64,000 bases of DNA from Selaginella moellendorffii (lineage: Eukaryota; Plantae; Lycopodiophyta). The stretch lies in assembly GCF_000143415.4 (NCBI RefSeq), contig NW_003314275.1, forward strand, positions 2,674,173-2,738,172, read 5' to 3'. The notes beneath the pieces are model-generated. The model ran no database searches. It had not been told where the DNA came from and saw nothing but the letters and a program-made list of their open reading frames with translations. The translations under genes were made by a program, and so were the position numbers. This document shows positions 307 to 33,468 of this stretch, one piece after another. Position 1 is the first letter of the stretch. Each line of letters starts with the position of its first letter.

Positions 307-1334
307 ATGGCGTTTGTGTTCTTTGTGATCTTGCTCTTATGCTCTATGTTCCAACTGGGAATCCCGACTTTGGTACATCTTTCCATTGTTCTGTGTTTCT
401 TTGATCTGACTCAAATTTGCAGGGAGGGGGCCCGGTGCCAAAATTCCAAGTTACTAGCCTTGCCGAGTATAAGCGCATGGTGAACTTGAATGAATATGAG
501 GGTCCATTTGTCCGGCTCGAAGAATACAACTATGCTGCGGCTGCCAACGGTGCTAGAGTCGTGAGCTTCAACAAGGAGGCCCAGGGTGGTGGCAACATTC
601 TCAACAGGATCAAGGACCAGCACTATAGCAGCCCATGCAGTGCCGAAGACAAGTTCGTGGTTGTGGAGCTCTCGAAGGAGATTTATGTGGGCGCAATCAT
701 CATCGTGAACTTCGATGAGGATTCATCCTATCCAAGAGATCTGGAGCTTCTAGGAAGTCTGGAGTATCCGACTGAGGAGTGGAAGCTCTTGGGGAGGTTT
801 GAGGCGAAGGATGATATCAGGTCTTTCCAGGCGTTCATACTCCCTAGGACAGATCACTCGGTAAGGTATCTCAAGCTCAGGATACTGTCACACCACCGGG
901 AGGAGTCCATCTGCACGCTTAGCACCATGATGGTGTATGAGCCCTTGATCAAGCGCACCCGTCCCCAGGTCTTTGATGCTCCATTCAAGCCAGAGCCGCC
1001 ACCATCACCTGAAGGACACATATCTTGTACGTGTCTTGGTGAAGAGATTGAGAAGGTAATTGGCCATCCTCAAGTTTAGATTGGCTAGATTTTGTCATTT
1101 GAGTTCTCTTTATTTTTCTCATGTTTGCTCTTGTCTTTGTGCAAGATGTTGGCCAAGGCGGGAAGTTGTAATGATCGGTGTTTTGATCCTTTTGTTGCTT
1201 TGATGGCACTTCCTCTTTTTCTTTACCTTTGCTCATTAGCTAAGAAATGTGGCCTAGTTGATGAAAGATTCGTTGCAGGGATCATACTCTCCTCAGGAAT
1301 GTTTTGTCTAATATTGGTGGTGTCTAAGATTTAA
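307..1334 (+). CDS. Mid-SUN (Sad1/UNC-like, SLP1/SUN3-5 type) membrane protein, copy 1, divergent
   Basis: Three in-phase exons: 307-372 (signal peptide MAFVFFVILLL...), 423-1055 (SUN motifs YNYAAAANGARV, SPCSAEDKFVVVELS, LLGSLEYPTEEW, RYLKLRILSH) and 1146-1334 (two hydrophobic segments). TATA-like ctataaa near 284. Confidence 0.85.
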
Positions 1335-4300
1335 TGCTGTGTTTTATCTATTTTGTTAATAAATGAAATTAATTATATATAAACATTCTCTTAAAAAAAT
1401 ATCAACCTATGAGGTCCAAGTGTATGGCTATGATGCCGTATATTAATATTAGCATAGTGGGATTTTGGTAGCCGTCGGATTAATTTCAATCCGGACCACT
1501 TGCTCATATATATAATCTAAGGTTTTTGGGTTAATTGAAATGCACATTTTTTGTATTCCTTTTCCATATTCAATCTATTTACATTGTTGGAAATGAGGGG
1601 CACTTTTGATTGTCCCTAAGGAGTGCTTGGATTTTTTTCAGATTTTTGGTTTAAATCTAGCTTTTGCATTATCTAAATCTTCTTTTGCTTTTAGCTTTTT
1701 TTCATTGCTCTTTCCTTTTTATTCATCTTCATGGCAGAGTAGTAGTCTCCTTCTCCTTTGACTCTGACGTAGCAATTGGTGCAATTGCTTGATACTATGC
1801 GATTGCAATTGAATAACCAAACTTAGTTGATGGTAGCATTCACAACATATGATATAGTTCCTCCTACTCTTCGTGCCAATCCTCACATTTAGCTGGAATT
1901 CTTTCATGGGAATCCTAGGGATGATGTGTACCATTGTGATTGCCACATATCATTCTTGGGATGGTACTTAACATTTGCATGATTTCCCATTTATCTCCAA
2001 GGGACGGTGTTGTAGTGGTACAATGGTTTGAGTGCAGCCATTCGTGGGGATTAGAATGTTCTCTCAGTCATCTTTAAACGCACATTCGGATATGTTGATA
2101 ATTGTAATAATGCCTTCCAACAATTGTATCGTCTTCATCAAAGACCATTTGAGTCAATGATGTAATTTAATGTTCATTTTCAAAGCTTCTTACCTTGTGC
2201 GGAGCTAAATATGTTGGAGCAGATCAAGCTAGAAATGTGGCTAACACTTCATCAAGATCTTGTTAAATTTATGCATGCACTTGCTCCAGCCAACCTTGAC
2301 AATACTCTTTGCTTGGCATAACATTATGAAATATTGTCTTTTCCACTTCTCCTTGCATGTCCTTCAACTCCACTTCCTGTGGATGATGGTGCTATTCTAA
2401 TGGAGGTTGATAGTCTTATTCCAATGGAGGTTGATGTTGTTACTACTCGAGTTCAAAGACAAGGGTGAGGACGTGGTTATGGCCATAATGTTCGCTGTTA
2501 GGTGTGTGATAAAGTTGGTTATACTTATCGGCATTATCAGCATTTTCCAGATTTGCGACCTCCATTTCCTAGGTGGAAACCTTAGCGTCAACAACATCTT
2601 GTTGATGCTACTGCAATGGAAGGGCTAGACACCAAGATGCATCCGGAAAACGAGGAATTGCACAAGTAATAGAAAGACCTTGTGTGAATAAGTTAACGAC
2701 CTTTTTATATTTCTTTCAGGAGTATTATCAAGGGGTTCATTTGGCACTAATTCATTCAAGGTTTACTTTCCAAGCTTGTTTTTATAACAAAAGGTTTTCT
2801 ATTATTCTCTTCGTGTTGGTTAATACAGGTTTGAGTTTATCTTCTATTGCTCAACCTGTTACCACACATTGCCGTCTACACTTGTATTGTGTGGTGGAGC
2901 CAGTTTTCATTCTTTATGACAACGGTTGTACATATGCATGTGCACAGGATGAGGTGGACCTAGTTATGTGTGTGGGTGATCTCAAGCTTGGGTTGCAGTC
3001 ATTGCAAATAATGCCAAGTCAAACTTTTGACCTCATCTTTGATATAAATTGGTTGTAGTGCAATCATGCGAAGTGTAACTTTGAGGCTTTTCCCCTTTGT
3101 GTCATACTTATATTTCATCTATTCCTTTCACTTTTGTACTTCTTCATCCCTCTGTTTTTACTTTTGCTTAAATTACTTTTGTCTCCCCATTACTTCCTTC
3201 TATGTTTCTGTCTTATTCTAGTTTTCCCTTTTTGAATCCCTCCGATAGTCTTTATGTTGCAGCGGTTGACTGGCTTATGAAAGAGTATGCCGATCTCTTT
3301 GAATTTGACCTATCTTTTAGGGCCAAGATTGGCACATGTCATCCAATTCCAATAAGAGATGCTCATCCAATCAAAATTCTTGTTCACCGTTGGTCACTCA
3401 AAGAGATCAAAATATTACATGCAAACGTTAAGGAGATGTTAGAAAAGGGTGTTATTTAAAAGTTGTGGAGTTCTTAGGCATGTGAACCTCATTTTGTGAC
3501 GAAATCTGATGGGAGTATTCATTTTTACATCAGCTATTATCCGTTAAACAAAATGATGGTCCCAGATGTATACCCTCTTCCTCACATTTCTGATCTTTTG
3601 GATTGTTTAGGGAGAAGTTGTTGGTTCACCAAGATAGATCTTGCTTTTGGGTACTGGTAAGTATCAATAACCAAAGAAGATATTTCTAAGACTGTTTTTT
3701 GTACACTATTTAGTTTGTACAAGTTTTTGGTGATGCCATTTGGTTTGAACAATGTTTTAGCAACTTTCCAACGGATGATAGACGAGGTTCTTTGTGATAT
3801 ATCAGAGGTGACTATTGACTTCATTGATGATATCTTGATCTATTCAGAGGGGATATGGGAGGAACATATCTGTGATATTTGTAAAGTGTTGGATTGGCTA
3901 CAAGATGTTATTTTAAAGCTGAAGTAATCAAAGTGCGTGTTTGGGTTTAAGGACACAACTTATCTTAGGTACCATATTTCTCGTAAAGGTTTGCAAGTTG
4001 ATCCTGACAAACTTGTGGTTGTTCTAAAGTTCCCTATTTTAAAGTGTGTGAATGATGTGTAGCACTTCCTAGGCAAGGTGTAATATCTTGGTTGTTTTAT
4101 GGATCATCTTTCTGATCTCACTACACCGTTGCAAACGTTGCTGAAGTCATCAATGTCATTTTTTATTTAGTCTCTGGGTTATGAGCAGGTATTCATATAT
4201 CTCAAAGAGCTTTTGACGACTCCTCTAGTTTTGGCATATCTTAACTACACTCGACTTTTCATTTTGCGTGTGGATGTTTCTGATATTAGTTTTGGAGGTG

Positions 4301-7300
4301 TGTTGATGCAAGAAAGTTCGAGTGTGTCTAATCAGTGCCATCCTATTGCGTATATAAACCATACATTACAATTAGTAGAGGTGAACTACTCCACGATAGA
4401 AAAAGAATTTTTAGTAGCAGTCTGGGTTTCAAGAAACTTCATGCATATCTACATGGTTCTTAGACGTTACTAAAAGGTGATCATGTTGCCGTTACTTCAT
4501 TTTTAAAGTGGAAGAACCTAGTTGGTCATACTGCTCGGTGGGATTTGAAGCTTCAGATATATAATTTTGATGTTGTTTATCGCTTGGGGAGTTTTATAGC
4601 TGATGCTAATGCCCTTTCTCAAGTTTTTTTTTTTCTTCACTCTCTTATTATGTTTTTGGTGAGCCTATTGTTCCAGCATTTGTGGATTTTCTAGACGAGG
4701 ACTTTATGCCGTCAGTAGTTGCTATACTTGACATTCAATGTCCACAAGGTGCAGAGCAAGATCTACCTTTTCTTGATGAGATTCATAAAGCTCAAAAGAT
4801 TGAGCTATAAATTCAAAAGCTTCAAGATAGATTTGAGAATCTTGTATCACTTGCAAATGACTTGCAATTCTGGCATTTATATTCTCAATATCACTTTAAA
4901 GACAGCCTTCTTTATTTTGTGGGGATAGATCCTGATGATCATTTATGGCTGGTGGTGCCTTCCGTCTTTATTCCATAATTTCTTTATACCTACCATGATT
5001 CTTCTGTGCTAGGTGGGCATATGGGACATCGTCATATGACTAAAAAGCTGCACAAGTCTTTTTATTGGCTAGAGATATGATATGATGTTATTCGATATAT
5101 TTGGAGTTGTGTTTGGTGTTAAGCTTGTAATACTTCCCTTCGTGCCATAGAAGGACAGTTAGAGTCAATTGCAATTTCCTGTTTGTTTGAGTTAGTGGCA
5201 TTTTATCTTATGGGACCTTTTCCACAATCTACTGCTGGCAATGAATATGATATTATTGCTTTTGACTATTTGACTTGCTGAATGGAAGTTGAAGCTTTTG
5301 CTAGTTCCTTTATAACTATTGTTGAATACTTCCTCCTCAATCAAGTGGTATTTTAGCATTCTTATCTAGAGCAGATTCTTTCAGATAATGGTCCTATATT
5401 TAAGCCCAAGGCATTTCATGTTTTGATGTCTCAGTTGGGGATATGCCACACTTTCATGAGTGTTTATCATTTACAGTTAGATGATTTGGTGGAATGGCTC
5501 ATTCAAACATTCAAAGAAATGATCGCGAAGTACGTGAACTTTCAGCATTCGGATTAGGATGGTTATTTTCTGTCTCTTTTGTATGCATATATCACAGGGG
5601 TGTAGAGTTTTATTGATGCTTCACCATATAAACTTTTATATAGTCATGATCCAATATTACCAACAAAGCTGGGTTTACCTTTGCAATTGCCACAAACTGC
5701 CCATGCTAGGTTGTGGGATTAGTATTTGATAAGCATTCTTCCACTTGTCTGAACAAAGTTCACTAAACACGTAGACCACATATAAGTGAAACAACAACAA
5801 TACTAAATGTCGCGAATATGACTTCAGGTATCGAAAGTTACCTGTCGGCCAATCCTTACGGACACTCTTACCTTACTGCCACAATGGCAAGAGGTCGGTA
5901 TTGCTAGTTCCCTTTATTAACCCCTCTTATTCAAGTGTTAGTAAACTGGACTTTGCATCTGTATTTGGCCAGATGAGCATAAGGAAGGAATTCCTAAATG
6001 TCTATTTAACTGAGCATACTTGGCCTGGCTTGTTAGTTCTCTTTTGCTCTGTCTTGCACTGGCTTGGCAAAAACATGAGACTAGTCTCTCAATATCGCTA
6101 GATGATAGTTTACCATGTCTACCAAACACCCTCGCTATCACGCCCTTTGTGTTAGTCTCATTTCAGTCCCAAATGCTATTTATGGAAAGTGTCTAGATTT
6201 GCTCATTTGGCAAATCTACGGAATGTAGAGGTCAGTCTGAACACAATGGTGTTCGTCCCATGTCCAAATTCGCAATCTAGCGCAATTCCATATTTAGTAA
6301 GTTTCGAGCTTGTCCCAGAGACTAACTCTTGGTACTAAGGGAGGCTTGGGGTGAAAGCCCAAAACCTGTGTTCCTCAAGGGAGGGGGGGGGGCTGTGGGG
6401 GGTTCCAAATGTATAGTAGGGATACTGAGTAGGTTAGGCATAGTCAACTAACTTGAGGCATAATCTAGCTCCCGCTTGCATGCTTGTCCTTGTTCTGCAT
6501 CCGGCTTGGGTCTAAGCCCAAGTTCCATTCCATGCTAGCTGGTGGAGTACCTATGTCCTTGCGTTAGGCCACCGGTATGCCGAAATAGCGCTAGGCTCTG
6601 TTTGGCTTCGTTTTGCATGCTGGTCCTGACATTGGGATGTTGGTTGCTCTAGGACTATTCCAAGTCGCTCTGGCTCCTATCCTTTCATTCCTTGGGGTAT
6701 ATGCTCGGGAGTTGCTCCGTGGTCTGGTTTCGTCACTCCTTGGCTCCATGTATGGGAGTTTGGCACCATTCCTTTGTTTAGTGGCCCAAGGCCCTGAACC
6801 TTGGATTCCGCACTTGTGTCCTTTGGACATGTGGTATATGACACGTGGCATGTGTCACGTGGCATAAAGAGGGTTTAGGTTCCACTTTGTGGTGTTATCC
6901 TATGGTAAATCACCATAGGATAAAGGGTCAAAACCACGTGCGCTACATTTGGTATCAGAGGATATGTCTCAGCGAGTACTATACAATGAGATTGGGCAAC
7001 TAGTTTCATTGCATACACAGAGATGAAAATGATGATCCGAGTGGGTACATGTTTGGGTGCAAAGGCCTCGCAATCGTTCCTTGGGTATGGTTTTTGTTAC
7101 CTTTTTGTACCCTGATAATGTGAGCTTGCTCTTAAGATGGATTGAGGTGTTCTGTTTGCACGAGTTTTCACTTGGGCGAGTGAGTTAGGCACATTAGCAA
7201 CTCGAGGCTACACTTTGAGTTGGCAGGATTAATGTTAGCCTATCGGTGGTTCCATGAGTTGTTCCATGTACCATGAGTTAAAGCAAACCTTCCCTGGGTT

Positions 7301-7846: not shown

Positions 7847-8433
7847 TGTAAGCTCCTGAGTTTGGACTTCCTGGGAGGTCACCCAACCTAGTACTATTCA
7901 CACCCAAGGACGTTTAACCCCAAATATCCCAAGACCCTTAACTGATTGGAAAAGAGGGTGCACTTTTGTTCATGGGCTCTTTCCCTCTATATTTAAACCC
8001 CTATGGATCGTCTTTCGAGTTGTTCCCTTTGGTTGCTTACAATCCACCACACTTCCTTGCAAGTTCACACCTTCGTGAACGGAAGCTAAGAGCCGCAGCT
8101 CTCCCGAGAGCCTCGCTCTCTTGACACCCTACCCCTCAGGTCGAGCCTAGCGGGAGCAAACTGGACCAGCTACATGTCAATCAACATATGGTGTGATTCC
8201 TTTAGCCAACCAACAAAGTCGGACCCGAGACCCCTTTGATACCAAATGTAAGCTCCTGAGTTTAGACTTCCCACCCAACCCAGTACTATTCACACCCAAG
8301 AACGCTTAACCCCAAATATCCCAAAACCCTTAACCGATTGAAAAAGGGGGTGCACTCTTGTTCATGGGCCCTTTCCCTCTATATTTGAACCCCTATGGAT
8401 TGTCTCTCGAGTTGTTCCCTTTGGTTGCTTACA
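7847..8433 (-). mobile_element. Cassandra-type TRIM with a 5S rRNA-derived segment in the LTRs
   Basis: LTRs 7847-8041 and 8247-8433 with a 205-bp interior. Minus-strand PBS tggtatcaaagg and PPT aaggaagtgtggtggat; TSD gctta/gcttg. Bases 7864-7918 match the 5S rRNA internal control region. Confidence 0.92.
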
Positions 8434-11400
8434 GCTTGCTATTAGAAGACTTAGGTTGCAATACTTAATTCTTTTCCAGAGAACCTTGCTATTACTCCTT
8501 GAGTAGCTTGGTGATGGATTAAGTTTTGAGTTTGGTCAAAGAGAGTGGCATGAGCTTATCCATGTTGTGAACAAAAGTTAGTGGTGTTGGGTGTTGTAAA
8601 TCTCTATCAGTGGAGTGTGGCATTTATATTGCATTTTGTCGAATTGAGTTGACACTTGATACTCACATAAACCTTTGTAGTAGTAACATGGGCATTGCTC
8701 ATAGTGTTACTTGATTAATGCTCAAGTCATTGTGATTTTTATATCATATCCATGTGATAATGAGTAATGTGTTTACGAAGTTGCTTGGTTAAACAATGAT
8801 CAACCCCAAAATGGTTGATAGTGAAGCTAGTTTACTTGCACGACGTAGCATTGTAGTAGCTTTGACTTGGTTCTCAATGGTGGTCCATTATGCTAAGCTT
8901 GAGTGGTACCTTGTTTCTTGAGAGTTTGCCTATTAGGTGTTGGAAAGGGTTGTAACATGCATTTGCTATAGCTTGTCGGTTGATTCGTTAACACTTAGAG
9001 TAAGTTCATTGGATGGAGAAATTGTGTAATTGAGGCATTGACATCGCTAACACTTGTGTTAGTGGAAGTGGTATTGTTATTTCAAGTGATGAGGAATTTT
9101 CCTTAGAACTTGATTTTATATGTCATTTTTCTTGTTAATGTTTTGGCTTCACATTGGATCTTGAAAGTGGTTGAAGAAGAGTGTTAGTGTAATGTGGATA
9201 TCTGAAGATATGGTTTTCGTGATCAAGCCTTGGATGTTCATTTGCATTTTGTGGATGTTGGTGTTAGATATCATAAGTATGGGCAAAAAGATGTTCGAAT
9301 CTTAAGCATACTATGGATCATAAAAATTGGTGTTGAGGTGAACCTATATGAAGTTGTCGATGGGAGGAAGTTGGTTGAGTCTTGAAAGTTTGTATTCCTA
9401 GACTGAGAGTCATTCTTTTTCTAGGATGGAAATTTTCCACAAATTTTCTTATGCTTTTCCAATGGTTAATCTGTTGATCACTTTGTCCAAAAACCATTCC
9501 GTTTTCGTAATCCAGTACAAATTAGTGAAGGGGTTGAAGTTAACTCTGGTTAGCTTAGACCTTAGTAAATAGTCTGTATGATGCAACCCGAAAGGGATGC
9601 TGACTTTTGGGGTTAAGGCAATTGAGTTGAATAGAGTTTGGAGTTGGTGTAGAAAAGTGGCTGTTGCGCTTTTTTAAAAAGGGTGACCCTTGTGCCTTTC
9701 TTTTATAGCATTGTGCTTACTCTATGAGAATAGTGAGCTTTTACTGATCTTGACTTAGTCTTGGCCTTGCACCTTGGCTGAGGATAGTGATGTCCAACTT
9801 AGTTGTTTGAGTTTGAGATGTTAGTACCCATACTATAGCTTTGTCTATGAGGAGGTTGTATACCAATATGAGTCCATCTCATAGTCTTCATTTTAGTTTC
9901 CACTAAGTGTTGATCATGTATAGCTAGCCTCTTCAAGGCATGCTCAGAGCTATTAACTAGATGTGTTGGTGAGTTTATCACAGTTGAGTTGGATTCGAGT
10001 GGTCATTTAGTTCGTGCTTGTCCATGAACCTTTATCTCAGACCTGGGGTATTACATTTATATTGGACAAGTGTATGACTCAATGGCACGAGTGTAGTGTT
10101 TGGTTCTTGTGAAGGCAAGTTGAAAAGTGATTATTGGTTGCTTTGCAATTAGTGATTACTAGTAGACTTTGTCGAAGACTTTTAACACTTGCTTCACTCA
10201 ATGAAGATTTAGCAGTGATGGGCTTGCTTTACCGGATGGTGTTGCAAAGGATCATGTTGTTAGACTTACATGGGTTTTCCATGTTGACATGTCGACTCTA
10301 CCTTTATCAATATCATTGGTTGCATTTAGTTCGTAGTGTTGGATTTTATTGAGTCTTGGATGTGGTGAATCACCCCTTGGTGATGTATTATCTGTACCTG
10401 CATAATGTTGAAGGATTGGTCTTGGATACCAAGTATAGTATCTTCGACTTTAGTTAGCTTGGTTGCTAGAGAGTTTTGAGTGGTGATTCACTCTTGCTTT
10501 CTTCTAGCTTTGTTATGGTGTTGATGGTATTGAAGTGATGCTCTATCGTTGACATTATTGATGTTGAGACTCGAGTGAAATGAGGTGTCTTTCTGTAGGA
10601 TTGATATTGAGTTTCATTAGTCGTGATAAAGATAGTGTTGATGATTTGGTTGTAACTTTATGTTGTTAGCATTCGTGCATTTGCTAGTTAGCAATTGTAT
10701 TCATGTTCAAATGAATTGAGTGGCAAGTTGAGTTAGTTGTGTTCCAGACCAGATTGCTTAGTCAAGGTTAAGATTTGAGCTTTTCCTTGAAAAGTGATTC
10801 ACTCATGAACTATGTTAGCTTTACGAGAGGAAAAATTAGTGATTGATATTAGAATGTTCAAATCCTTATTGGATTTGAGTTAGAATATATCGATCATAGA
10901 TGATTCTCTTGTGCTTATTATGAAATGAGTTACGTTTTGCTATAGATGGATTTATAGAAGATTGTTTAGTGATCACTTGTTGAGCATAGCTCCATTGTGC
11001 TTGGCTTTTGGATTGATGCAAATATTTTCTTCATTAGCTTTGCATTATGAAGTTTAGCTTATAAGTATGTTGAAAAGGATATTGTGGGTTATACTATGAT
11101 TTCTTCTTTAACATTGAAGTTAATTCATGCAAAAACTTGTGATTATTGTTAGACAAGGCTTGGCTATAAGCTTCTTCAAGCTTTTCGTTCTTTGAGTTTT
11201 CATGCTCATTGTTTCATTTGTTCAGAGTTGTTGGGGAAAGACATTTTTGGCTCTTTAGCTTTGATGTTGAAGTTAGTGTTTGCATTTGGCAATCATTGGT
11301 GATGATTGACTATTATTTTAGATAGTTGATTATCCTTGTCAAGAGTTTTGCTTGATTATTGTTGATATAGATTGAGTTGCTGTTCTTCGGGATGGTAGAT

Positions 11401-14400
11401 TCTTTCGTCAACAATGATTATGCATCTCTTTTTTGATGGGATGATTAGTGATCTTTCATGATAGTTAGTTGTTCTCTTTGATGGCTTATGGCTTTTTGCA
11501 ATACCACATGTTGTTTGTGGTTTGCTCTGGATTGGTCTCTTGGGTTTGAGACATCAGTAGGATGTTGCTGGCACTTGCTTAGACAAACTCTGGTTCCTTG
11601 ATATTATTGACCAGGATCTATTCAGATTGATTAGTGTGATGGTTAGCATGAACGAGTGTTTATTGGTTTTACTATATACATTTTGTTCTGTTGATCATTA
11701 CTTGAGTTAATTCTGATAGATTGGGATGTTATTACCTTCGAGTGATACATTCGCGAGCATCTTGCTTGCCAATCGATGATACTTTGTGTTCTTTGAATTA
11801 TCTTTTGTAAGTTGTTTGGCATTCTGTCGGCAATCTTTGATAGTTAAGTTTTATCATCAAGTTTTCTTAATGATAGTTTGGCTATTGAATTTTGTTAAAT
11901 GGTGAATCCTATGTTTCCAAAAACATGATGATCTTGGTGGTTCTTGTACTATACTACTAGTTTATCAGATGATAACTTACTTGGAATACTTTTGTGTTTT
12001 AATATAAGATTTAATCACTGATACTTATAACTCTAAGATATCATTGTCTATGACTTTGATATTATCCGATTATTGATCTTTGAGTTTGGGCAAGTATAGA
12101 CAGACTGACTTCGGCACTTCGTATACATGGTGAAATCTCTAGTCATAGGGTAACTACTGTTGACTAGTCACATAACCCGCCTCTCTGTCGATGTTCCTTA
12201 TTCCGTTAAAAGGGTGTGACCGTGTAAACAACTCTAACTGCCTGTTTATAGTAGTCTATCTAAACCTTACCGACGGGTTTGGTTTCTTTGCTCAGGAGGG
12301 TTGGGGCCTTTGGCTTCTCTCTCTATATCCCTGCGGGTAGGGGCATATCACACTTTTGTAAATTGGGTGACAACCAGAGCAGCAAGGGTGGCTGACTCCA
12401 TTAGTCATTTCCTTGTTGGCGATAGCCGAAAGGTGTCTGAGCTGGTAGCGCATCCGCGTTAGACAAAGAAGTTGCCTTCTAACTTATTTAAGTTGGTGCA
12501 TTTCTCACATAGTGTGAATACCGTAAACTTTTTATGGAGTTGTTTCCTTGGCAGTATTCTAGACTCGAGTATGCATCGACGAGGACGTCAATCTTCCCTT
12601 GAGGGGGAGAGTGTCACAAATGTGACTTTGGATATCGAAAGTTACCTGTCGGCTAGTCCTTACGGACACTCTTACCTTACTGCCACGATGGTAAGAGGTT
12701 GATATTGCTGATTCCCTTTATTAGCGCCTCTTGTTCAAGTGTTAGTAAACTAGACTTTGTATCTGTCCTTGGCCGGATGAGCATAAGAAAAGAATTCCTA
12801 AGTGTCTATTTAGCTAAGCATACTTGGCCTGGCTTGTTAGTTCTCTTTTGCTCTGTCTTGCACTGGCTTGGCAAAAACCCTCGCGTGTTGAGACTAGTCC
12901 CTCAATATTGCTAGATGATAGTTTACCGTGTCTACCAGACACCCTCGCTATCATGCCCTTTGTGTTAGTCTCATTTCGGTCTCAAATGCTACTTAAGCCA
13001 ACTGGAAAAGGGGCAATTGCTTAATGAGAGAGCCCTTAATGATGAGGGGAACTAGCACCTCTATTTCCATACTCAATATACCAATCCTTCCATTGTGTAG
13101 ATTAGCTAATCCATATGAGGCAACTAATTATCCACCCATACCGCAGTCCCACGGTGGATACCTTTGTCTGTGGATATTCCTCTTCTTTCGCTTATGGATA
13201 TTCCACCCATACCATAATCCCATGGTGGATACCTTCGTCTGTGGATATTCCTCTTATTTCGTCTGTGGATATTCCACACAAGAGGAAGGACGTATGCATG
13301 CATATGATTTCAAATTTAGGGGTAGGAATATACCTTTCTCAAAGGTATATTATATTTTTAAGTAGCCACTAATCAATGGGAATCGAACTCGTGCTATTTG
13401 TTTTAATACCACATGTAGCGCACCTTATCTCTCTCCCCTTAAGCCAACTGGAAAAGGGGCAATTGCTTGATGAAAGAGCCCTTAATAACGATTTTATCCC
13501 CATTTATCCCCCAAGGTTCCAAGGATCCACAGTGATAGTATATTCAAATCTCATCCTATGATCACATGCGCTACACTAAAACTCTTATCATTGTCCACCT
13601 GCAGAGTACAAAGTGGATGATTTGGTGTTAGTTTATTTTTCCCATTTTATGGTATGTGGTTTATCTAAGAGGCTCTTTATTCAGTGGAAAAGACTGTATC
13701 AGGTGTTGTGGCAAGTTGAACCACAAGTTCATGAAGTTCAACATGATATTCAATACGCCGATCCTCCAAAAATTGTGCACGTGCAGCAGTTGAAACGTGT
13801 CATACAAAGGGATCATGAACAACTAATACCACCTACAGATCCGTTAATGCCTCCAAATCCCGACCCATATACAAGAGAACCTTGATAATCTTCTATTATT
13901 CCAAGAGGAAGGGATGATGTGAGGTCTAAGTGTACAGCTAAGATGCTATATACTAATATTAGCGTAGTGAGATTTAGGTAGCCATAAAAATGGTTTTAAT
14001 TTAGACCACTCACTCTTGTATATAAGCTAGGGTTTATGGGTTAATTGGGATGCATATTTTCTGTATTCCCTTTTCATATTCCATGCACCCACAAACCTAT
14101 AAATCTATTCAAAATTTAAGAGTAGTTTTAAAAAAATATTTAAGTTTAAAGAAATAATATGTATAGCTATAAATAATTAAAAATATTAATATATATTAAA
14201 TCTTTTGTAAATTCTCAAACTTGGACCTTGAGTAGTTTAAGTTTATCAAACAATTGGATGTTTTATGGACTGAAAATAATTATTTTAAAAGTTCAATAAA
14301 TAATTTATTAAGTGATGCTAGCTAAGTCTGAAGCTCTAAACTTGTATTTCATATAAGCATTACCTTTAACCCACTACAAATGTATGAATTTATATTACTT

Positions 14401-22405: not shown

Positions 22406-24813
22406 TGTCGTGAATGTGACTTCGGGTATCGAAAGTTACCTGTCAACTAGTCCTTACGGACAATCTTACCTTACTACCACGATGGCAGGAGGTTGGCATT
22501 GCTGGACCCTTTATCAGCCCCTCTTGTTCAAGTGTTAGTAAACTAGACTTTGCATCTGTACTTGGCCGGATGAGCATAAGGACGGAATTCCTATGTGTCT
22601 ATTTAGCCAAGCATACTTGACCTGGCTTTTTAATTCTCTTTTGCTCTGTCTTGCACTGACTTGACAAGAACTCTTGCGTATTGAGATTGGTCCCTCAATA
22701 TCGCTACATGATAGCTTACTGTGTCTGCCAAACACCCTTGCTATTATGCTCTTTGTGTTAGTCTCATTTCGGTCCCAAATGCTATTTATGGAAAGTGTCC
22801 AAATTTGCTCATTTGGCATATCTATAGAATCTAGAGATCGGTCTGAACATAATGGTGTTCATTCCGTGTCCAAATTCGCAATCTAAGGACATTCCATATT
22901 TAGTAAGTTTCGAGCTTGTCCCAGAGACTAACTCCTGATACTAAGGGAGGCTTGGGGTGAAAGCCCAAAGCATGTGTTCCTCAAGAGGGGGGTTATGGGG
23001 GGTTCCAAATGTATAGTAGGGATAGTGGGTATGTCGGGCATGGCCGACCAACCTGAGGCATAGTCTAACTCCCGCTTGCATGCCTGTCCTTGTTTTGCGT
23101 CTGGCTTGGGTCTAAGCCCAAGTTTCATTCCATGCTAGCTGATGAAATACCCATATCCTTGCGTTAGGCCATCGGTATGCCAAAATAGCACTAGACTCTG
23201 TTTGGCTCTGTTTTGCATACTAGTCCTGGCATTGGGATGTTAGTTGCTCTAGGACTGTTCTAAGTCGCTCCAGGCTCCTATCCCTTCGCTCCTTGGGCTT
23301 GCCTGTCCTTGTTCTGCGTCTGGCTTGGGTCTAAGCCCAAGTTTCATTCCATGCTAGCTGGTGGAATACCCATATCCTTGCGTTAGGCCACCGGTATGCC
23401 AAAATAGCACTAGACTCTGTTTGGCTCTGTTTTGCATGCTAGTCCTGGCATTGGGATGCTGGTTGCTCTAGGACTGTTCTAAGTCGCTCCAGGCTCCTAT
23501 CCCTTCGTTCCTTAGGCTTTATACTCGGGAGTTGCTCCGTGGTTCGGTTCTATCACTCCTTGACTCCATGCTTGGGAGTTTGGCACCGTTCCTTCGTTCG
23601 GTGGCCCCAGGCCCTAAACCTCAGGTTCCTATGGACACATGGCATGGACACACGTGGCACAAAAAGGGTTTAGGTTCCGCTTCGTGGTGTTATCCTATAG
23701 TAAATCACCATAGGATAAAGGGTCAAACCACGTGCATGTAAGTTCCTAAATTTGGACTTCCAAGGACGCTTAACTTCAACTATCCCAAGACCCTTAACCG
23801 ATTGGAAAAGGGGATGCACTCTTGTTCATGGGCCCTTTCCCTCTATATTTGAACCCTAATAGATCGTCTTTCAAGTCGTTCCCTTTGGTTGCTTACAATC
23901 CACCACGCTTTCCTGCAAGTTCACGCCCTCATGAATGGAAGCTAAAAGCCGCAGCTCTCCCGAGAGCCCCGCTCTCTTGACACCCTACCCTTCGGGTGGT
24001 GTGATTCCCTTAGCCAACCAGTAGAGTTAGTCCCAAACCCAAGGATGCTTAACTTCAACTATACCAAGACCCTTAACCAATTGGAAAAGGGGATGCATTC
24101 TTGTTCATGGGCCCTTTCCTTCTATATTTGAACCCCAACAAATTGTCTTTCAAGTCGTTCCCTTTGGTTGCTTACAATCCACCACGCTTTCCTGCAAGTT
24201 CATGCCCTCATGAACAGAAGCTAAAAGCCGCAGCTCTCCCGAGAGCCCTGCTCTCTTGACACCCTACCCTTCGGGTGGTGTGATTCCCTTAGCCAACCAA
24301 CAGAGTTGGTCCCAAACCCAAGGACGCTTAACTTTAACTATCCCAAGACCCTTAACCGATTGGAAAAGGGGATGCACTCTTGTTCATGGGCCCTTTCCCT
24401 CTATATTTGAACCCCAACAGATCGTCTTTCAAGTCGTTCCCTTTGGTTGCTTACAATCCACCACGCTTTCCTGCAAGTTCACGCCCTCATGAACAGAAGC
24501 TAAAAGCCGCAGCTCTCCCGAGAGCCCCGCTCTCTTGACACCCTACCCTTCAGGTGGTGTGATTCCCTTAGCCAACCAACAGAGTTGGTCCCGAGACCCC
24601 TCTAATACCAAATGTAAGCTCCTGAATTTAGACTTCTCGGGAGGTCAGCCCAGTACTATTCAAACCCAAGGACGCTTAACTTCAACTATCCCAAGACCCT
24701 TAACCAATTGAAAAAGGGGGTGCACTTTTGTTCATGGGCCCTTTCCCTCTATATTTCAATCCCAACGGATCGTCTTTCGAGTCATTCCCTTTAGTTGCTT
24801 ACAGTATGCTACA
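22406..24813 (+). mobile_element. Solo LTR of the element B family, with an internal 219-bp tandem duplication and a Cassandra insertion
   Basis: Homologous to 5808-6947; ends ctaca at 24813; TSD actgg/actga; duplicated segment about 23082-23300 and 23301-23519. Confidence 0.9.
23737..24803 (-). mobile_element. Tandem-array Cassandra TRIM (four LTR segments, three internal domains)
   Basis: LTR ends at 23897, 24176, 24455 (279-bp period) and 24803. Single PBS (tggtattagag on minus) at about 24600-24610. 5S-like segment in LTR 24613-24803. Confidence 0.92.
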
Positions 24814-26164: not shown

Positions 26165-27559
26165 TTACACCAGAAGTAAGAGGATTACCAAAAAGCCTGT
26201 GAGCGCAAGGCGGACGAGGATTCGTATCTTAGCTACAACCACAAGCATTGCCACCAACGCCACCGTGAGAGAGTAAATCTGGCCCCTGTTTATGCGAGCC
26301 ACTTCCTTCCTACATAGTCTGCAAAAGGAAAGCAAGTAAAAAGGGCCATGAGAAAATGGCTTAGCTTGAGAGACCTCAGTTCCTTCATGGATTTAGAAAA
26401 CACGTCGTCCGCAAGACGATGCTGCAAAGAAAAACCAAATTAAGGAAAGGAAATCTAAGAAAAGGTCTGCTTACTTGCTTCTGCACAGTGTCGTTCAGAC
26501 TCTTAAGCTGCCTCATTATGTTTGTCAGCTCCTCTTGGTACTCATTGACAGCAGCAGTGTTCTGGGAGTTGGAAAACTCCACGTACTCCTCAAAAGTCTT
26601 CTGGTCACTTTCCAGTTGTAGTATCTGTTCGATGAGGAACTTGTTCACAGACGTAGTGGAACCACTAGTGGAATCCCCCGGGGAACTGCCAATCAAATCT
26701 TCAAGCATGCGCCCAAGCGCGACTCCAAAAACCTCGAAGGTGCTAAGCGTGCAGTAAAACTCCGTCCCATAGTGTGAGAGGATCCTCAGCTGGAGATATC
26801 TCGCCCACTCTGGCTTCGACAGAATAAACCTCTGAGGTTGCCCAACGTTCCTCGCCTCGAACTTTCCCAAGAGCCTCCATCCAGATGTAGGATAGCTCAG
26901 GCTTCCCAGCAGCTCCAGCTCCCTTGGATTGGACGAGTAGAGCTCGTAGTTGGCGATGACAAATGTTTCCACCAGAATTTCTTCAGCCAGCTCCACCATG
27001 ACGAACTTCTCCTTGGCGCTGCATGGGTTCCGAAAGTACTTATCGTTGCCCTTGACGAGAATGTTGCCAGCACCCTTGCCTTCCTTGTTTGCCCCTAAAA
27101 CTTTAGCACCGAGTGAGGCTGCGGCATAGTTGTGTTCGTTGCCCCCAACTTGGCGGTCGCGCTTGTGCCTGTTATCGTCGTCTTGATTCTCACTTGCTGA
27201 GACGAGGATATGCGAATGGAGAGGATTGAGTTCCGGACTAGCGAGAGGAACACTTCGTTCTTCCGCTAGCGCTGTGGCACGGTCGGGATCGAAGGGACTG
27301 ACTTCTTCACCGTTGCTAGAACTCTGGAAATTTTCGCTCAGAGAAACAAGATGGAAGAAAGAAAAGGTACCTCAGCAGTGCGATTGCACGAAATATCGAG
27401 GAACTGCTCTTCCAAATCGAGAATCTGGTGATGCGCCTCCAAAATCTCGGGGATTGGAGCTTCATCGACCTCCGGAAGCTCGGAATGGAGCTCCATCCCG
27501 ATCCCCAGTCCCGAGACGACCAAGAGAAGGAGCACCGCAAGACGTAGATTGCTCACCAT
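26165..27559 (-). CDS. Mid-SUN protein, copy 2 (signal/TM, SUN, coiled coil, two TM)
   Basis: Exons 27559-27371, 27323-26475, 26421-26375 and 26318-26165 join in frame with GT-AG introns. Motifs HNYAAASLGAKV, NYELYSSNPRE, SHYGTEFYCTLS. Confidence 0.9.
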
Positions 27560-28240: not shown

Positions 28241-28244
28241 CCTA

Positions 28245-28267: not shown

Positions 28268-28284
28268 GTGCACTATCCGATACG

Positions 28285-28745
28285 GTGTTAGGGTTTTTAC
28301 TTTCATGATGCGGTGGTTCTGATCTTCGTAGTCTTGCTCTTCTGGTTCGTTTCAGCACAGGGGATGGGGATTGAGCTCCATTACGGGGATCCGGAGACCA
28401 ATCTAGCTGAAGCTCTCCGATGAGCTCCACGCTGGGGGATGAAATGCAGGTCGGAGATTTCCGCAGATGCAGAGCTGACTTTGCCGGATCTTGCGCCGAG
28501 GTAGGCTTCTATGCTCATGTTTTCTTGTTGTGTAGTCATTGAGCTACGGCCTGTGGATCTTGGCACAGCGGCGAGTGAAATCTCGCACAACGTCGTGGAG
28601 GACAAGTATGCCACAGCCTCGCTGGGCGCCAAAGTTATAGGAGCGAACAAGAAAGCCGAGGTGGTATCTACATTCTCGTCAAGGACAAGGATAAGCACTT
28701 CCGCAGCCGAAGACAAGTTGGTGGTTGTGGAGTGTTCTTTGGCTG
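28285..28745 (+). pseudogene. Truncated copy of the 5' part of mid-SUN copy 3
   Basis: Near-identical to 29660-30170 (IELHYGDPET, SCAE|gtaggc, YATASLGAKVIGANK) with deletions and frameshifts; runs into PPR sequence. Confidence 0.85.
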
Positions 28746-28779
28746 CTGCAATGCCATAGAGCTCTCCGAGGCCGCACAT

Positions 28780-29500
28780 AGCAAATCCACCATAGAGCAA
28801 TAGCTTCATGGTTTTGGAGAGATCAAGGGCGTCCATACCGTAGCCGGGCATCTGGGTGTACAGGGTGTTCCACGTGACGGGATCTGGAGCGTGCATTTCC
28901 CGGAAGGTGGACTCGGATGTGCCCGTTCTGGGCATATGCCTGGAGCCTGACGCACCACATCGCTCCTGTTTGAAGAGATTCTTGGCAAATGCCCCGACCA
29001 TGCAGCTCCATGCTAGGATGGTCTTCTCCGGCATTGAGTTAGAGATTCTTCAAGATGCCCTGATTGGGCATATTCTTGGAGCAGGAAAGACTACAATAGC
29101 GTCCCATGCGGGCATCTGATAAGTTTCCAGCGTTTATACAGGCCTCTATTAGTGTGGTTCACGACACTTTTTATGAAATACTAAACGAGCTTTATCAAGA
29201 ATGGGCATATGCTCTAATCAAAGCAGTCGCTCAAAATCTGGCATAGAATCAACTAAGCTGTTATCATTCGGTTTCTTCTCTGGGCTTCTTGGATATGCCC
29301 AGACTGGGAATATGCCTGGGTCAGAGAATTCGGCCACACCCGCTCTGGGCAATTGCTGTGAGAAGAACATTCCACGACACAACATTCCAGATCAAAGGGC
29401 CGCTTCGTGTCCTCGACATTCTGTATGGGCGATCCAGGCCAGCCTCCGATTTCTTGACTCGCTTCACGCAATTCTCGCAGGGGAACTGGAGCTTGAGATG
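28780..29500 (-). pseudogene. PPR gene fragments
   Basis: MPEKTILAWSCMVGAFAK, QAYAQNGHI, NVVSWNVLLTAIAQSG and QAYSQSGHIQEA occur in different frames. Confidence 0.75.
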
Positions 29501-29681
29501 CGCGGGACGATGTACAACGAGAAGAAAACAGAGAGCCAAGTTTGAATGCGTCGATTGCGACTAAGAAGAAATCGAGGCGTTTGATACTGGAATATTAGTG
29601 GTTTTTAAAATTTAGGGTTCGTGTCTTTTTCCCTCCATTTTGATGAAGCCCTAGCCCCGGCATTGTAGGGTTTCTTGTTCT

Positions 29682-31178
29682 ATGGCGGGCGATCGTCGTC
29701 TTCCGGTGGTTCTGATCTTCGAAATCTTGCTCTTCTGGTTCGTGTCGGGAGCCGGGATCGGGATTGAGCTCCATTACGGGGATCCGGAGACCCATGAAGC
29801 GCAGATTTTCGAAGCGCAGCTCTCCGATGAGCTCCAGGCTGGGGAGGAGCGCGATGAAATGCAGGTCGGAGATTTCCGCGGATTCAGAGCTGATTTTGCC
29901 GGATCTTGCGCCGAGGTAGGCTTCTGCGCTCATGTTTTCTTATTCTTAAGTCATTGAGTTGCGAAACTTTCCAGCCTGGGGATCTTGGCACAGCGGCGAG
30001 TGAAACCTCGGACATCCTCGTGGAGGAAAACTATGCCGCAGCCTCGCTGGGCGCCAAAGTCATAGGAGCGAACAAGGAAGCCGAGGGTGGTGGCTACGTT
30101 CTCAACAAGGACAAGGATAAGCACTTCCGCAGCCCATGCAGTGCCGAAGAAAAGTTCGTGGTTGTGGAGCTCTCCGAGGAGACTCTGGTGGTCACCATCG
30201 CCATCGCCAACTACGAGCTCCTCTCGTCCAATCCAAGGGAACTGGAGCTCCTGGGAAGTTTGGAGTACCCAACCGAGGAGTGGAAACTCTTGGGGAGGTT
30301 CGAGGCGAAGGATGTGAGGATCCCGCAGAGGTTTACGCTGTCAGTACCGGAGTGGGCGAGGTATCTCAAGCTGAGATACTTGTCACACTATGGGACGGAG
30401 TTTTACTGCACGCTTAGCACCTTCGAGGTGTTTGGAGATGGCGTTGAGCGCATGATCGAAGGCTGGATGGGCAAGAGACCCATTCTCAACATCAGCTCGT
30501 CCAGTGAAGAGAATCAGTCCCAGGCACCATTCCAGAAGGTCTTCCCCAGAGTCCCTCAAGGTGAGAAAGGATTCTCGCAGGTTGTTTTGGTTGGAAAGGT
30601 CAGAGAGCTGGCGATGAAGCGGAAGATACTGTTGGATTACATTGACTACGTGAGGATGGTGCTCTTAGAGAACTCTCATCGAGAGATGCCGAAAGTGGTC
30701 TCGCGACTCGAGAGTGTGAAGATCGAGGTAAAACTTTTTATTTCTCTTAGTCATTTGCTTCTTTTTCCGTCTTTCTAGGTTCAGGCTGCAAGAGTGTTAG
30801 TGGACAACATCACGGTGCTTCAATTTCCGATCAAGTACAGCCATTCATTTTCTTTTACTCTATTAAAAAAAAATTATTTGCAGGCGTTGCGTGAAACAAA
30901 TCAGAAACATTAGCGATCGGCGTTACTTTGTGGTCACCATGGCGTTCTTAGTAACAGTTTACCTCTTCCTCTCTAGCATGGCTATCCGTCAAGCAATAAA
31001 GCTCATGTAAGTATTGTCAAGCTTGGATACCCTGGACCTTTCTCTAACAGGATTCATTCCTGTTTAGGTGGCGGAGAATTTTCGGAAGCACTCGCTATGA
31101 ACACTTGCTACGGGTAAGTATGAGGCAGAAGAATCTTTACTGAGACAAACTTTTCTACTCGTTCTCCAGATCCCCTGA
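29682..31178 (+). CDS. Mid-SUN protein, copy 3
   Basis: Exons 29682-29915, 29975-30727, 30779-30834 and 30884-31007. Either stop at 31010 or continuation through 31068-31113 and 31170-31178, all in phase. Canonical SUN motifs, helical region and TM. Confidence 0.88.
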
Positions 31179-32240
31179 TTTTCTCTCCGGATTCCAACCC
31201 TCTTGAGCGCTTGCCCCGCGATCACTTGCGGGCATCTCCTTCATCTCGTCCACCACCTCCAATTCCAGAGGGCGGCGAGGACATCATATGCCTGCCGATA
31301 ATCCAAAACCATAAGACGCTCTGGAATTTGCTTGGACGCTTACCAAAAGAATCGCCTTTGGAAAGCTCTCTTTCTCGCTGGAAACTCTTGCCGAGTGTTA
31401 CATAATCTTTGGTGAGAAACAATCTCTTCAAAAAAATTCCCAAAAATTAATGCAAGTGTTAGATGAAAGTAGGCATCCTGAAAGTGACGGAAATCGAGTC
31501 TCCTTTACCCGGATCAGCTCCTGGTTACATATCCGCTTCTTCGGGACGATCATGGCTTCTTCCCGCAAGTGTGAGTGTAGAAGTGTCGCAGTAGCGATTC
31601 TTCCAGGCTCTCGTCTATAACAAGCAACACTGGAGGGGTGTCACTTTCGAGTCCGCCACTGGATCGTGATCATGAAGTCCTCGACGAGCTCACGAGCTCT
31701 GGCCAGTTATGCAAATCGTTGGTGTTGGCAGGGCCTGTCTTCTCCATTGCTGCTGTTGATCTTCTGGCAAAGCATGCATTGCGACTAGAGTCGGGTACTC
31801 TCTTCCTGGTGATAGCAGCGCTCCAAAAGCCAAGGTTGTTGCCTCAGGAGCTTCTTCTCGCTCAAGATAAACTTAAGAAGAGTAGAACAAACTTTACATA
31901 CCACTCGAGATGTAAACATGAGTCAGCTTCATGGAGCCTGCTCGATCCAATGGTGCTTCTCGCTAGCCGTAGGCTAGCGATCATGAAAACCCTATGTGCG
32001 ATCACTGGATTTGATGAAATGTGTATGTACTATTCCCCAATGCCCCTTAGGGGCTAAAACAACAGCAAGAGTGCATTCTCAGAGAGACTAACAAGACTAC
32101 GAGCATGGACGCCCGGCGTTGCCCGTGGGCCGTCCACCTCCCAGGTGACTCGATTCGAACCCAGAAGGTGTCCTAAGAGATTTTAGGGTTCTTCCTACTT
32201 CAAACATCCGGCGGGAAGACATCAGGCCGAGCTAGGGTTG

Positions 32241-33468
32241 ATGGCGCGCCTTCCGGCGCTGCCGCGCGTGCTCTTCATAATCTTGCTGCTGTCGGTCTGC
32301 GACCGGGCTCCATTCTTCGATCACGCAGATTTGCGATGGTAAGCGAGCTCGGCACGAGGAAAGCTCTCCGGACGTAGAGTACCAGATTCTCGAGTCCGAT
32401 GAGCTCTATTTCGGGGATCTGGAGCGCGATGAAGCCGAGATTTCGGTGGAATTGGATGGCGTCGAGATCTTATCGGCTCGAACCGCTCTATCCGCTGCCG
32501 AGGTAGGCTTTCCCATGGTATTTTTTTTCTTATGGTTTCATTTGAGCTGGTTTTGAACTTTCCAGAGCCATGAGGAGCCTATGGAGAATACTACTGCCTG
32601 CGAACGACTGAAAAAGGTGACAACTGTTAGCTTGAAGGATTACAAAAGAATGGTGTCGTGGGCAAGCGAAAGTGACAAGTGGAACACCACGATCAAGCAC
32701 AGGCTCGAGCCCGGGGGTGAGGAGTTCAACTTTGCCGCAGCCTCGCACGGTGCTCAAATAGTGACCTCAAGCAGCGATGGGGGTAATCTTCTCAAGGATA
32801 AGTACTTTCGCAGCCCATGCAAGGCCAAGGAGAAGTCTTTTGTCTTGCAGCTTGCAGAAGAAGTCTTGGTGGATACCGTCGTCATCGAAAATCACGAGCT
32901 CTACTCGTCCAATCCAAGGGAACTAGAGGTTCTGGGAACCCTCAGGTATCCTACAGAAAGCTGGAGGCTCTTGGGAAATGTCGAAGCACAGAATATTTGT
33001 CGACCTCAAAGGTTTGTGCTGCCGAAGCCGGAGTGGGCGAGGTATCTGAAGCTGAGGATACTGTCTCACTATGGGAACGAGTATTACTGCACGTTGAATC
33101 ATCTGCAAATTTTCGGTTCAGGCCTTGAAGGATTGATTGAAGAAGCTCAACCTTACTGTGAGCAGCAGCAGCAGGTAAGAACGTTTTCGTGTCGACTTTG
33201 TGGTTGCTCACAGTCTTTCCATTTCCAGGATGCCACACAAATCCACAAATTGCAGGAAGAGTTAAGGTTAGTCTGTTTTCCATAGCTCATCTATTTGTCT
33301 TTTTTGTCTTCTTAAATTCTTCCCTTTTCCAGGCTACTCAAGAGCCAGATGGCTGACGACGTGTTGTATGTTGCTATTGCTGTCCTGGTTGTAGTGTCTG
33401 CCGTTCTCGTGTATCCGTGGATGGGTACTATCGTATGTTTGGTGGTGATCCACATAGCTACCTCTTGA
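32241..33468 (+). CDS. Mid-SUN protein, copy 4 (5' end apparently frameshifted; possible pseudogene)
   Basis: SUN exon about 32565-33174 (FNFAAASHGAQI, NHELYSSNPRE, SHYGNEYYCTL), then exons about 33229-33266 and 33333-33468 with TM segments. The signal-peptide frame from 32241 hits TAA near 32340 while homology continues in another frame. Confidence 0.75.

Follow-up and report, generated by a model that had tools for sequence, protein, structure and literature searches.

A probable tandem expansion of shortened mid-SUN genes at one locus of Selaginella moellendorffii

We analyzed a 64,000-nucleotide stretch of the Selaginella moellendorffii genome (scaffold GL377579.1:2,674,173-2,738,172, assembly GCA_000143415.2; hereafter, the window) that contains a cluster of genes for proteins with a centrally placed SUN domain (mid-SUN proteins). 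In most eukaryotes, mid-SUN proteins are encoded by few gene copies, and whether they guard folding and sorting in the endoplasmic reticulum (ER) or link structures at the nuclear envelope is debated. Judged by sequence, the cluster is an array of PM3-type, Slp1/SUCO-like mid-SUN genes, and the window likely carries the larger part of a single locus that holds every mid-SUN gene found for S. moellendorffii. The array is probably a lineage-specific tandem expansion in which one gene, SUN3, has stayed close to the ancestral sequence and four others, S1 to S4, have been shortened and have diverged, with functions that may be proposed by analogy.

Four long open reading frames (ORFs) in the window matched the Pfam SUN-domain family Sad1_UNC (PF07738), with E values from 7e-23 to 4e-28. 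These ORFs lie at 417-1076 on the plus strand (S1; E = 7e-23), 26388-26999 on the minus strand (S2; E = 1e-24), 29906-30775 on the plus strand (S3; E = 6e-28), and 32581-33282 on the plus strand (S4; E = 4e-28). A tblastn search with the four ORFs added a fifth, truncated SUN copy at 28514-28738 (+), which bears out the five SUN-domain loci, in both orientations, of an earlier note made from the letters of this DNA. A word search with the S3 ORF placed S. moellendorffii SUN proteins on top, followed by plant mid-SUN proteins (“slp1-like” and SUN3/4/5), while the same search with S1 exon 2 matched Selaginella proteins only. All significant matches of the array copies were plant or streptophyte mid-SUN proteins. 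The array was assigned to the mid-SUN class because of the Pfam matches, because the best matches were all plant mid-SUN proteins, and because S1 exon 2 is predicted to fold as a SUN domain. Locus L002, placed through the GenBank model of S2, matched window positions 15883-37559 at 100% identity.

Homologous proteins guided the gene models, for which an open frame and GT-AG introns were required. Joined spliced models were used only to count frame, stops, and identities; searches and fold predictions used single exons or public proteins. Full-length stand-ins were P0002 for S2, residues 1-389 of P0127 for S3, P0186 for S4 (the allele on the second haplotype, hapB), and P0112 and P0125 for S1-type genes, and S1 itself was searched and folded as exons and not as a joined product.

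The window contains three intact genes (S1, S2, and S3), one frameshifted allele (S4), and one fragment (psiS3). S1 is a three-exon gene on the plus strand (307-372, 423-1055, and 1146-1334) with GT-AG introns and an open frame. Its product of 295 amino acids (aa) comprises a SUN domain that has diverged strongly, preceded by the signal/anchor exon and followed by a proline-rich linker and two C-terminal hydrophobic segments, with neither a coiled coil nor a PM3-associated domain (PAD), the latter being a region of ~38 aa that Murphy et al. 2010 defined (PMC3017857), located 80 to 90 aa beyond the SUN domain. S2, a four-exon gene on the minus strand (27559-27371, 27323-26475, 26421-26375, and 26318-26165), encodes 412 aa, and its spliced product is residue for residue that of XP_024531221 (P0002), annotated as “SUN domain-containing protein 4.” It has a signal/anchor, an acidic disordered spacer, a SUN domain, a PAD, a long helix, and a C-terminal membrane region. 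S3, again with four exons (29682-29915, 29975-30727, 30779-30834, and 30884-31010; plus strand), GT-AG introns, and an open frame, encodes 389 aa that equal residues 1-389 of the fused GenBank model SELMODRAFT_411386 (P0127); it retains the PAD and helix weakly and has only one C-terminal hydrophobic segment.

S4 (32241-33468, plus strand) has a start codon at 32241 and open exons 2 to 4 (32566-33174, 33229-33266, and 33333-33468). The frame that begins with the signal peptide reaches a stop at 32340, and the rest of the homologous exon 1 sequence, up to 32502, is read in another frame. The shift comes from a deletion of 2 bp in exon 1, as judged against the intact allele of scaffold GL377575.1 (hapB). 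The hapB allele has a RefSeq model of 348 aa (P0186), to which exons 2 to 4 of the window allele are identical at 246 of 260 residues; the PAD is absent from S4, and there is almost no coiled coil. Rescue of exon 1 by splicing was considered and rejected, as the frame is kept only by weak non-consensus donors or by an implausible 25-nt intron. The fragment psiS3 (28292-28756, plus strand) is a broken partial copy of the 5′ end of S3 that takes in the first exon and intron and ~160 nt of exon 2, and has 83% nucleotide identity to 29704-30134 within S3. It is frameshifted, lacks an in-frame start codon, and terminates inside the SUN domain; no copy of it is present in the corresponding interval of the other haplotype. 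Of the four genes and one pseudogene originally proposed, S1 to S3 and the broken psiS3 stand as described, while S4 is intact on hapB and frameshifted in the window. An ORF of 217 aa at 28381-29034 (-), annotated as a 184-aa gene, is antisense to psiS3; it matched no family and probably represents a spurious model.

The array does not begin at position 307, as had first been supposed, but extends past the left edge of the window, with SUN3, an S1-like fragment, and a degenerate SUN3-like copy all within 13 kb upstream. The conserved SUN3 gene (SELMODRAFT_441228; P0001) encodes 492 aa and lies at 2,659,814-2,661,497, 12.7 kb upstream of the window. Adjacent to it is psiS1, an S1-like 5′ fragment (555-782 of locus L006, GL377579.1). 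The degenerate copy psiSUN3, found with tblastn and blastn searches of SUN3 against L006, occupies L006 ~11230-12481 on the plus strand and ends at window positions 1-3 (window position 1 is L006 12479). The order on the window haplotype, over ~48 kb, is therefore SUN3, psiS1, psiSUN3, S1, 25 kb of repeats, S2 (on the opposite strand), psiS3, S3, and S4. Public gene models cut across these units: GenBank model 411383 (P0128) fuses psiSUN3 with S1 exon 2, and model 411386, of 757 aa, is a fusion of S3 and S4. A chimeric SUN3-like remnant (SELMODRAFT_429596; P0193) was also observed on a third scaffold of 523 kb. The gene located 3.5 kb upstream of SUN3 (L001 3283-6464) encodes a leucine-rich repeat (LRR) receptor kinase, which we note as Arabidopsis mid-SUN proteins guard LRR-kinase sorting; no evidence links the two.

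The S. moellendorffii assembly contains both haplotypes (PMC3095285), and scaffold GL377575.1 has the same upstream flank as the window haplotype (LRR receptor kinase, LEA_2, a 585-aa gene, and SUN3), 97.3% identical over a length of 9.6 kb. A reading of the scaffolds as old paralogous segments was rejected in view of this flank, the same gene order, and the presence of both haplotypes in the assembly (PMC3095285), although it may still apply to the distal S1-S2 block. GL377575.1 carries SUN3 with an adjacent S1-type gene (P0112) and, ~67 kb further, an inverted block of S3-, S2-, S1-, and S4-type genes plus an S1-like fragment, and both copy number and gene order differ between the haplotypes. 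Identity between haplotypes was 98.4% for SUN3, ~97% for S3 (first 900 nt), and 95.8% for S4, compared with ~85% for S1 to either S1-type gene and 83% for S2. Relative to their positional counterparts on GL377575.1 (L003, L004, and L005), S1 and S2 have 0.2 to 0.4 synonymous substitutions per site (dS), against flanking genes that are 96 to 98% identical, and the three S1-type genes are roughly equidistant from one another. The S1 and S2 divergence could reflect non-allelic copies, ancient alleles, or gene conversion.

Comparison with the second haplotype changes how the published gene count is read. Of the species sampled by Yuan et al. 2021, S. moellendorffii was reported to have the largest number of SUN genes, 13 in total, of which nine are mid-SUN genes (409313, 409314, 409316, 409317, 411383, 411384, 440338, 440339, and 441228; PMC7982736). 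All nine identifiers map to this locus on the two scaffolds, with 409314 and 409317 assigned by gene order. Among the nine there is one fused model; S1 lacks a separate model, and the S3-S4 fusion is off the list. The published count of nine is thus one locus on two haplotypes, fused and missing models included, with five or six genes per haplotype. The tandem arrangement and the haplotypes go unmentioned in Yuan et al. 2021 (PMC7982736). The expansion was therefore known as a count, and its structure as an array had not been described; the suggestion in the earlier note of an undescribed system is not supported, since the gene identifiers and the high count were already in that paper.

Phylogenomic comparison placed the duplications within the Selaginella lineage. 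A first SUN-domain tree of 125 sequences grouped ten Selaginella copies (Shimodaira-Hasegawa-like approximate likelihood ratio test [SH-aLRT] support, 95). In a bryophyte-rooted tree built from 148 columns of 38 sequences, all 11 Selaginella copies formed one clade (ultrafast bootstrap, 99; SH-aLRT, 99), and the branching matched the species phylogeny, with bryophytes first, then the Selaginella clade, then ferns and seed plants. A profile of the Selaginella copies was also searched against 1.84 billion representative sequences clustered at 50% identity, a clustering that may hide close relatives in other Selaginella species; the top five matches were all from S. moellendorffii (405 to 678 bits), and the next was from Taxus (295 bits). 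When 63 representatives were added to the tree, the Selaginella clade remained at SH-aLRT 100. Diphasiastrum complanatum (a lycophyte; 942 aa), Marchantia, Riccia, Chara, Psilotum, and Ginkgo all fell outside this clade. Because the Selaginella copies exclude Diphasiastrum and the other plants, the tandem duplications appear, on this tree, to post-date the split of the Selaginella lineage from Lycopodiaceae, in agreement with the local, lineage-specific expansion first suggested. By the same tree, none of the copies is an orthologue of the angiosperm SUN3 or SUN5 group. In RefSeq they are called “SUN domain-containing protein 3,” “4,” and “5,” as might be expected if each were the orthologue of an old mid-SUN subfamily such as these groups, but a single Selaginella clade that excludes every other plant sequence sampled contradicts this idea and leaves it scarcely credible. 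Inside the clade, SUN3 takes a basal position, and branch lengths are strongly uneven, from ~0 for SUN3 to 0.15 for S2, 0.18 for S3, 0.62 for S4, and 0.86 for S1.

The encoded proteins are short, as had been anticipated, with 492 aa in SUN3, 412 in S2, 389 in S3, 348 in S4 (hapB), and 295 in S1, compared with 550 to 1015 aa in other streptophytes. Hydropathy (Kyte-Doolittle) placed a hydrophobic segment at residues ~1 to 25 and hydrophobic segments at the C terminus of all copies, a signal peptide and an anchor at the N terminus being indistinguishable by this measure. The C-terminal segments number two (or one long double segment) in S1, S2, and S4 and one in S3. The first exons of the copies are homologous by alignment, so that both the related signal-peptide exons and the C-terminal membrane segments claimed in the earlier note find support. 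The SUN core spans residues 58-194 of 295 in S1 (summed over exons), 128-263 of 412 in S2, 97-232 of 389 in S3, and 143-272 of 348 in the S4 allele P0186. Between the SUN core and the first membrane segment on its C-terminal side there are 148 aa in SUN3, 111 to 129 aa in S2 and S3, and ~37 to 50 aa in S4 and S1 (~37 aa in S4). By alignment, SUN3 and S2 have a recognizable PAD and S3 a weak one, whereas the S4 and S1 types have none.

AlphaFold2 modeling of S2 (P0002, with a 55-sequence alignment) gave a short N-terminal helix, a disordered acidic region at 18-122, a SUN sandwich at 130-265 with a predicted local distance difference test (pLDDT) score of >90, and a continuous helix at 286-411 that runs into the membrane region. 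For S1 exon 2, the model was a confident beta-sandwich (mean pLDDT, 83), beyond which lies a proline-rich tail that is disordered and forms no helix. Coiled coils were gauged from these AlphaFold2 helices and from spacer length, and the long helix in S2, the absence of one after the SUN domain in S1 exon 2, and the graded spacer match the range of coil lengths, from long to absent, that had been noticed at the outset. A Foldseek search with the S1 exon 2 model returned human SUN2 and SUN1 first (4DXT, 5ED8, and 6WMG; E, ~3e-10; template modeling score, ~0.6), and CBM32/discoidin modules ranked next (E, 1e-7 to 1e-6), consistent at the level of fold with a lectin-like SUN domain. A sequence search with S3 exon 2 against the PDB gave no match; the link to SUN1 and SUN2 comes through fold search alone. 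For each intact gene, the product is modeled as a small membrane protein that starts with a signal or anchor, continues with an acidic disordered spacer and a SUN beta-sandwich holding both conserved cysteines, and ends in a membrane hairpin. Two further features were observed across the copies. The “GVDA” motif just beyond the SUN domain, conserved from mosses to angiosperms, is one residue short in all Selaginella copies, including SUN3, and all Selaginella copies lack a cytosolic N-terminal tail ahead of the first hydrophobic segment.

In this architecture, the array most resembles the plant PM3-type mid-SUN proteins (Arabidopsis SUN3/4/5 and maize ZmSUN3-5), which likewise have a central Sad1_UNC domain, an N-terminal hydrophobic segment, C-terminal membrane segments, and an acidic luminal region. 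The PAD and coiled coil after the SUN domain are shared with SUN3 and S2 and more weakly with S3, the SUN domains are 55 to 70% identical, and in both cases a genome carries several paralogues, one of them tissue-specific in maize. The Selaginella proteins differ from these in length (295 to 492 aa versus ~550 to 680 aa), in having hardly any cytosolic N-terminal tail, in the shortened “GVDA” motif, in the absence of PAD and coiled coil from S1 and S4, in the single C-terminal segment of S3, and in that their paralogues, gathered in one tandem array, have an origin separate from the angiosperm SUN3/SUN5 split. Yeast Slp1 (with Emp65) and mammalian SUCO/Osteopotentia (with TAPT1) belong to the mid-SUN class as well and, according to PMC9110389, are ER-membrane proteins whose luminal SUN domain guards folding clients; unlike the Selaginella genes, they are single-copy. 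The C-terminal SUN proteins of LINC complexes, which link nucleoskeleton to cytoskeleton (human SUN1/SUN2 and Arabidopsis SUN1/2), have the same fold. Identity to them is ~20%, however, and the Selaginella SUN domain is central, with membrane segments after it and a coiled coil that follows rather than precedes it, such that no Selaginella copy has the C-terminal SUN domain after a trimerizing coiled coil that defines the LINC type. CBM32 and F5/8 type C (discoidin) galactose-binding-like modules share the beta-sandwich superfold, and S4 had a weak Pfam F5_F8_type_C match below the cut-off. In comparison, identity to these modules is 10 to 17%, and there is no evidence of a sugar site.

All pairwise ratios of nonsynonymous to synonymous substitution (dN/dS, or omega) in the SUN domain, over 130 to 138 codons, were between 0.13 and 0.57, and every bootstrap interval was below 1. 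The ratio was 0.44 (0.28 to 0.74) for S1 versus SUN3, 0.26 (0.16 to 0.42) for S4 versus SUN3, 0.15 (0.07 to 0.29) for S1 versus S1a, and 0.16 (0.08 to 0.30) for S2 versus S2_B; among the three S1-type copies, omega was 0.15 to 0.38. At the 66 positions conserved in at least 90% of 27 other land-plant sequences, SUN3 departed at 5 to 6, S2 at 6 to 8, S3 at 10 to 11, S4 at 22, and the S1 types at 26 to 31 (27 of 66 in S1 itself), and both conserved cysteines were retained in every copy. This pattern points to relaxed purifying selection with strongly asymmetric rates, rather than to neutral decay or to demonstrated positive selection. On the long stems leading to S1 and S4, episodic selection is possible, the ratios being pairwise. 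Neutral dN/dS (together with absent expression) and orthology to ancient conserved mid-SUN clades had been named in the earlier note as outcomes that would count against its reading, and neither neutral dN/dS nor such orthology was found; structure prediction, another check proposed there, returned a SUN beta-sandwich for S2 and for S1 exon 2.

These ratios also bear on whether the array consists of decaying, nonfunctional duplicates around a single working gene, SUN3. The three fragments, the frameshifted S4 allele, the loss of PAD and coiled coil, the many changes at conserved sites, and transcript look-ups without evidence of expression would all be expected of such a remnant. We nevertheless consider it very improbable, given the complete ORFs and canonical splice sites of S1, S2, and S3, the intact S4 on the other haplotype, the retention of both conserved cysteines, the well-folded prediction for S1 exon 2, and an omega that is significantly less than 1 in each lineage as well as among S1-type and among S2-type copies.

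The course of events that we favor would begin with tandem duplication in the Selaginella lineage after the Lycopodiaceae split. SUN3 would have stayed near the ancestral sequence, S2 and S3 would have drifted moderately, and S4 and S1 would have diverged strongly, losing the PAD and the luminal coiled coil. The locus would still be turning over, as suggested by the fragments, the frameshifted S4 allele, and the different order and content of the second haplotype, much as in the birth-and-death process invoked in the earlier note. For function, we infer by analogy from two systems, yeast Slp1-Emp65 and Arabidopsis POD1-SUN3/4/5-CRT3. Arabidopsis SUN3/4/5 belong to the POD1-SUN-CRT3 complex, which guards the sorting of LRR receptor kinases (PMC10180911, PMC9110389), and the yeast Slp1-Emp65 complex, as cited in PMC9110389, offers the second model. 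By this analogy, the SUN domain (and the helix, where present) would face the lumen of the ER or nuclear envelope and bind folding clients or partners, SUN3 would be the probable housekeeping gene, and S1 to S4 may be sub- or neofunctionalized helpers, S2 and S3 being specialized to a moderate degree. S1 and S4 retain a SUN domain under selection on a membrane hairpin and lack the regions responsible for oligomerization. In Arabidopsis, SUN3/4/5 with the coiled coil deleted go to the Golgi (PMC9110389). Because the coiled coil is needed there for ER retention, S1 and S4 are predicted to behave differently from the other copies; these coil-less proteins might exit the ER or act only via a partner.

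Yuan et al. 2021 offered a different account of the high gene number, namely, that extra SUN proteins make up for missing KASH proteins (PMC7982736), the outer-membrane partners in LINC bridges. The proposal is published (PMC7982736), and the long luminal helix predicted for S2 and S3 could pair with C-terminal SUN proteins. However, the count of nine on which it draws is inflated by two haplotypes and by fused or missing models, the coiled coil through which Arabidopsis SUN proteins contact one another is missing from S1 and S4, and Arabidopsis mid-SUN proteins are mainly components of ER and outer-membrane chaperone complexes (PMC9110389, PMC10180911). We regard this compensation as quite remote.

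A fast-evolving receptor, lectin, or reproductive family had been suggested for these genes in the earlier note. In its most developed form, the derived copies, chiefly S1 and S4, would be a fast-diversifying lectin-like receptor or reproductive family acting beyond the ER, with haplotype hypervariability as the trace of diversifying or balancing selection. Several observations are compatible with this: the SUN fold ranks next to CBM32/discoidin lectin modules in Foldseek, S1 and S4 lack the coiled coil whose deletion sends Arabidopsis SUN3/4/5 to the Golgi (PMC9110389), S1 and S2 are 83 to 85% identical between haplotypes versus 96 to 98% for their neighbors, copy number and order vary, and maize ZmSUN5 is pollen-preferred (PMC3017857). 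Yet no pairwise omega reaches 1, those among the S1-type copies included (0.15 to 0.38), transcript look-ups gave no contig for any copy, and sugar-binding residues are not defined for SUN domains. On balance, we think this suggestion unlikely. It is also conceivable, though speculative and to our minds improbable, that the S1 and S4 types represent a new mid-SUN architecture, a SUN sandwich on a membrane hairpin without PAD or coil, that has escaped from ER retention and serves as lectin-like receptors, post-ER or at the cell surface, or guards lineage-specific secreted proteins in a client-specific manner, with the S1 and S2 divergence recording long-lived selected alleles at a hypervariable locus.

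We therefore retain a lineage-specific tandem expansion around a near-ancestral SUN3 as the likely explanation, although several points weigh against it. Divergence of S1 and S2 between haplotypes (15 to 17% of nucleotides, against 2 to 4% for SUN3, S3, and S4) is unaccounted for by the expansion, and the comparison with the second haplotype leaves out 50 kb of hapB. Timing within the lycophytes rests on one outgroup, Diphasiastrum, with no other Selaginella or Isoetes sequence identified. The S4 frameshift could be an assembly error. The functional analogy is drawn from angiosperm and yeast homologues that are only ~40 to 65% identical in the SUN domain, and transcript-level look-ups gave no contig for any copy.

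The remaining sequence of the window comprises a repeat-rich spacer and a set of unrelated genes. The spacer between S1 and S2 (1335-26164, ~25 kb) contains no ORF of at least 140 aa. It carries broken Ty3/gypsy reverse transcriptase and RNase H pieces at 3661-3924 and 4171-4470 (Pfam RVT_1 and RT_RNaseH_2), dispersed repeats common to 5.9-8.4 kb and 22.5-24.9 kb, AT-rich blocks of 24 to 29% GC, and tandem arrays of 219- and 279-bp units at 23081-24592 with 95% identity, related copies of which lie 16 kb away at 7880-8433. The repeats at 23081-24592 and 7880-8433 may belong to one large degenerate element or be two repeat copies flanking an AT-rich spacer core. The Ty3/gypsy pieces and tandem arrays agree with the transposon-rich setting initially described. 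Downstream of S4 lie ordinary plant genes, for a Rho_N/SAP-like protein, three Nodulin-like transporters of the major facilitator superfamily (MFS), a dihydrouridine synthase, and a LOTUS-domain protein. The three Nodulin-like/NFD4_C MFS genes fall within 14 kb, at 38892-40535 (-), 40582-42129 (-), and 50911-52767 (+), and form a second local family cluster. An ORF of 430 aa at 35584-36873 (-), annotated as a 385-aa hypothetical gene, contains a Walker-A-like “GNPGVGKS” motif, and partial repeats of it occur at 34586-34829 and 36860-37223 with 82 to 90% identity. It is probably the neighbor that had been called Crinkler-like, a label that stays unconfirmed, as the ORF matched no Pfam family even at E values up to 5 and had no PDB relative.

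Otherwise, the array is an ordinary tandem family expansion, a set of new members, including two truncated architectural variants, of a known family. For the one plant that has been reported as a mid-SUN outlier, the organization of the locus corrects the record. For the family, SUN3, then S2 and S3, then S4 and S1 form a natural deletion series in which the PAD and coiled coil are progressively lost and the SUN domain is under selection, and localizing these natural variants would provide a direct test of the roles of the coiled coil and PAD in ER retention and partner binding.

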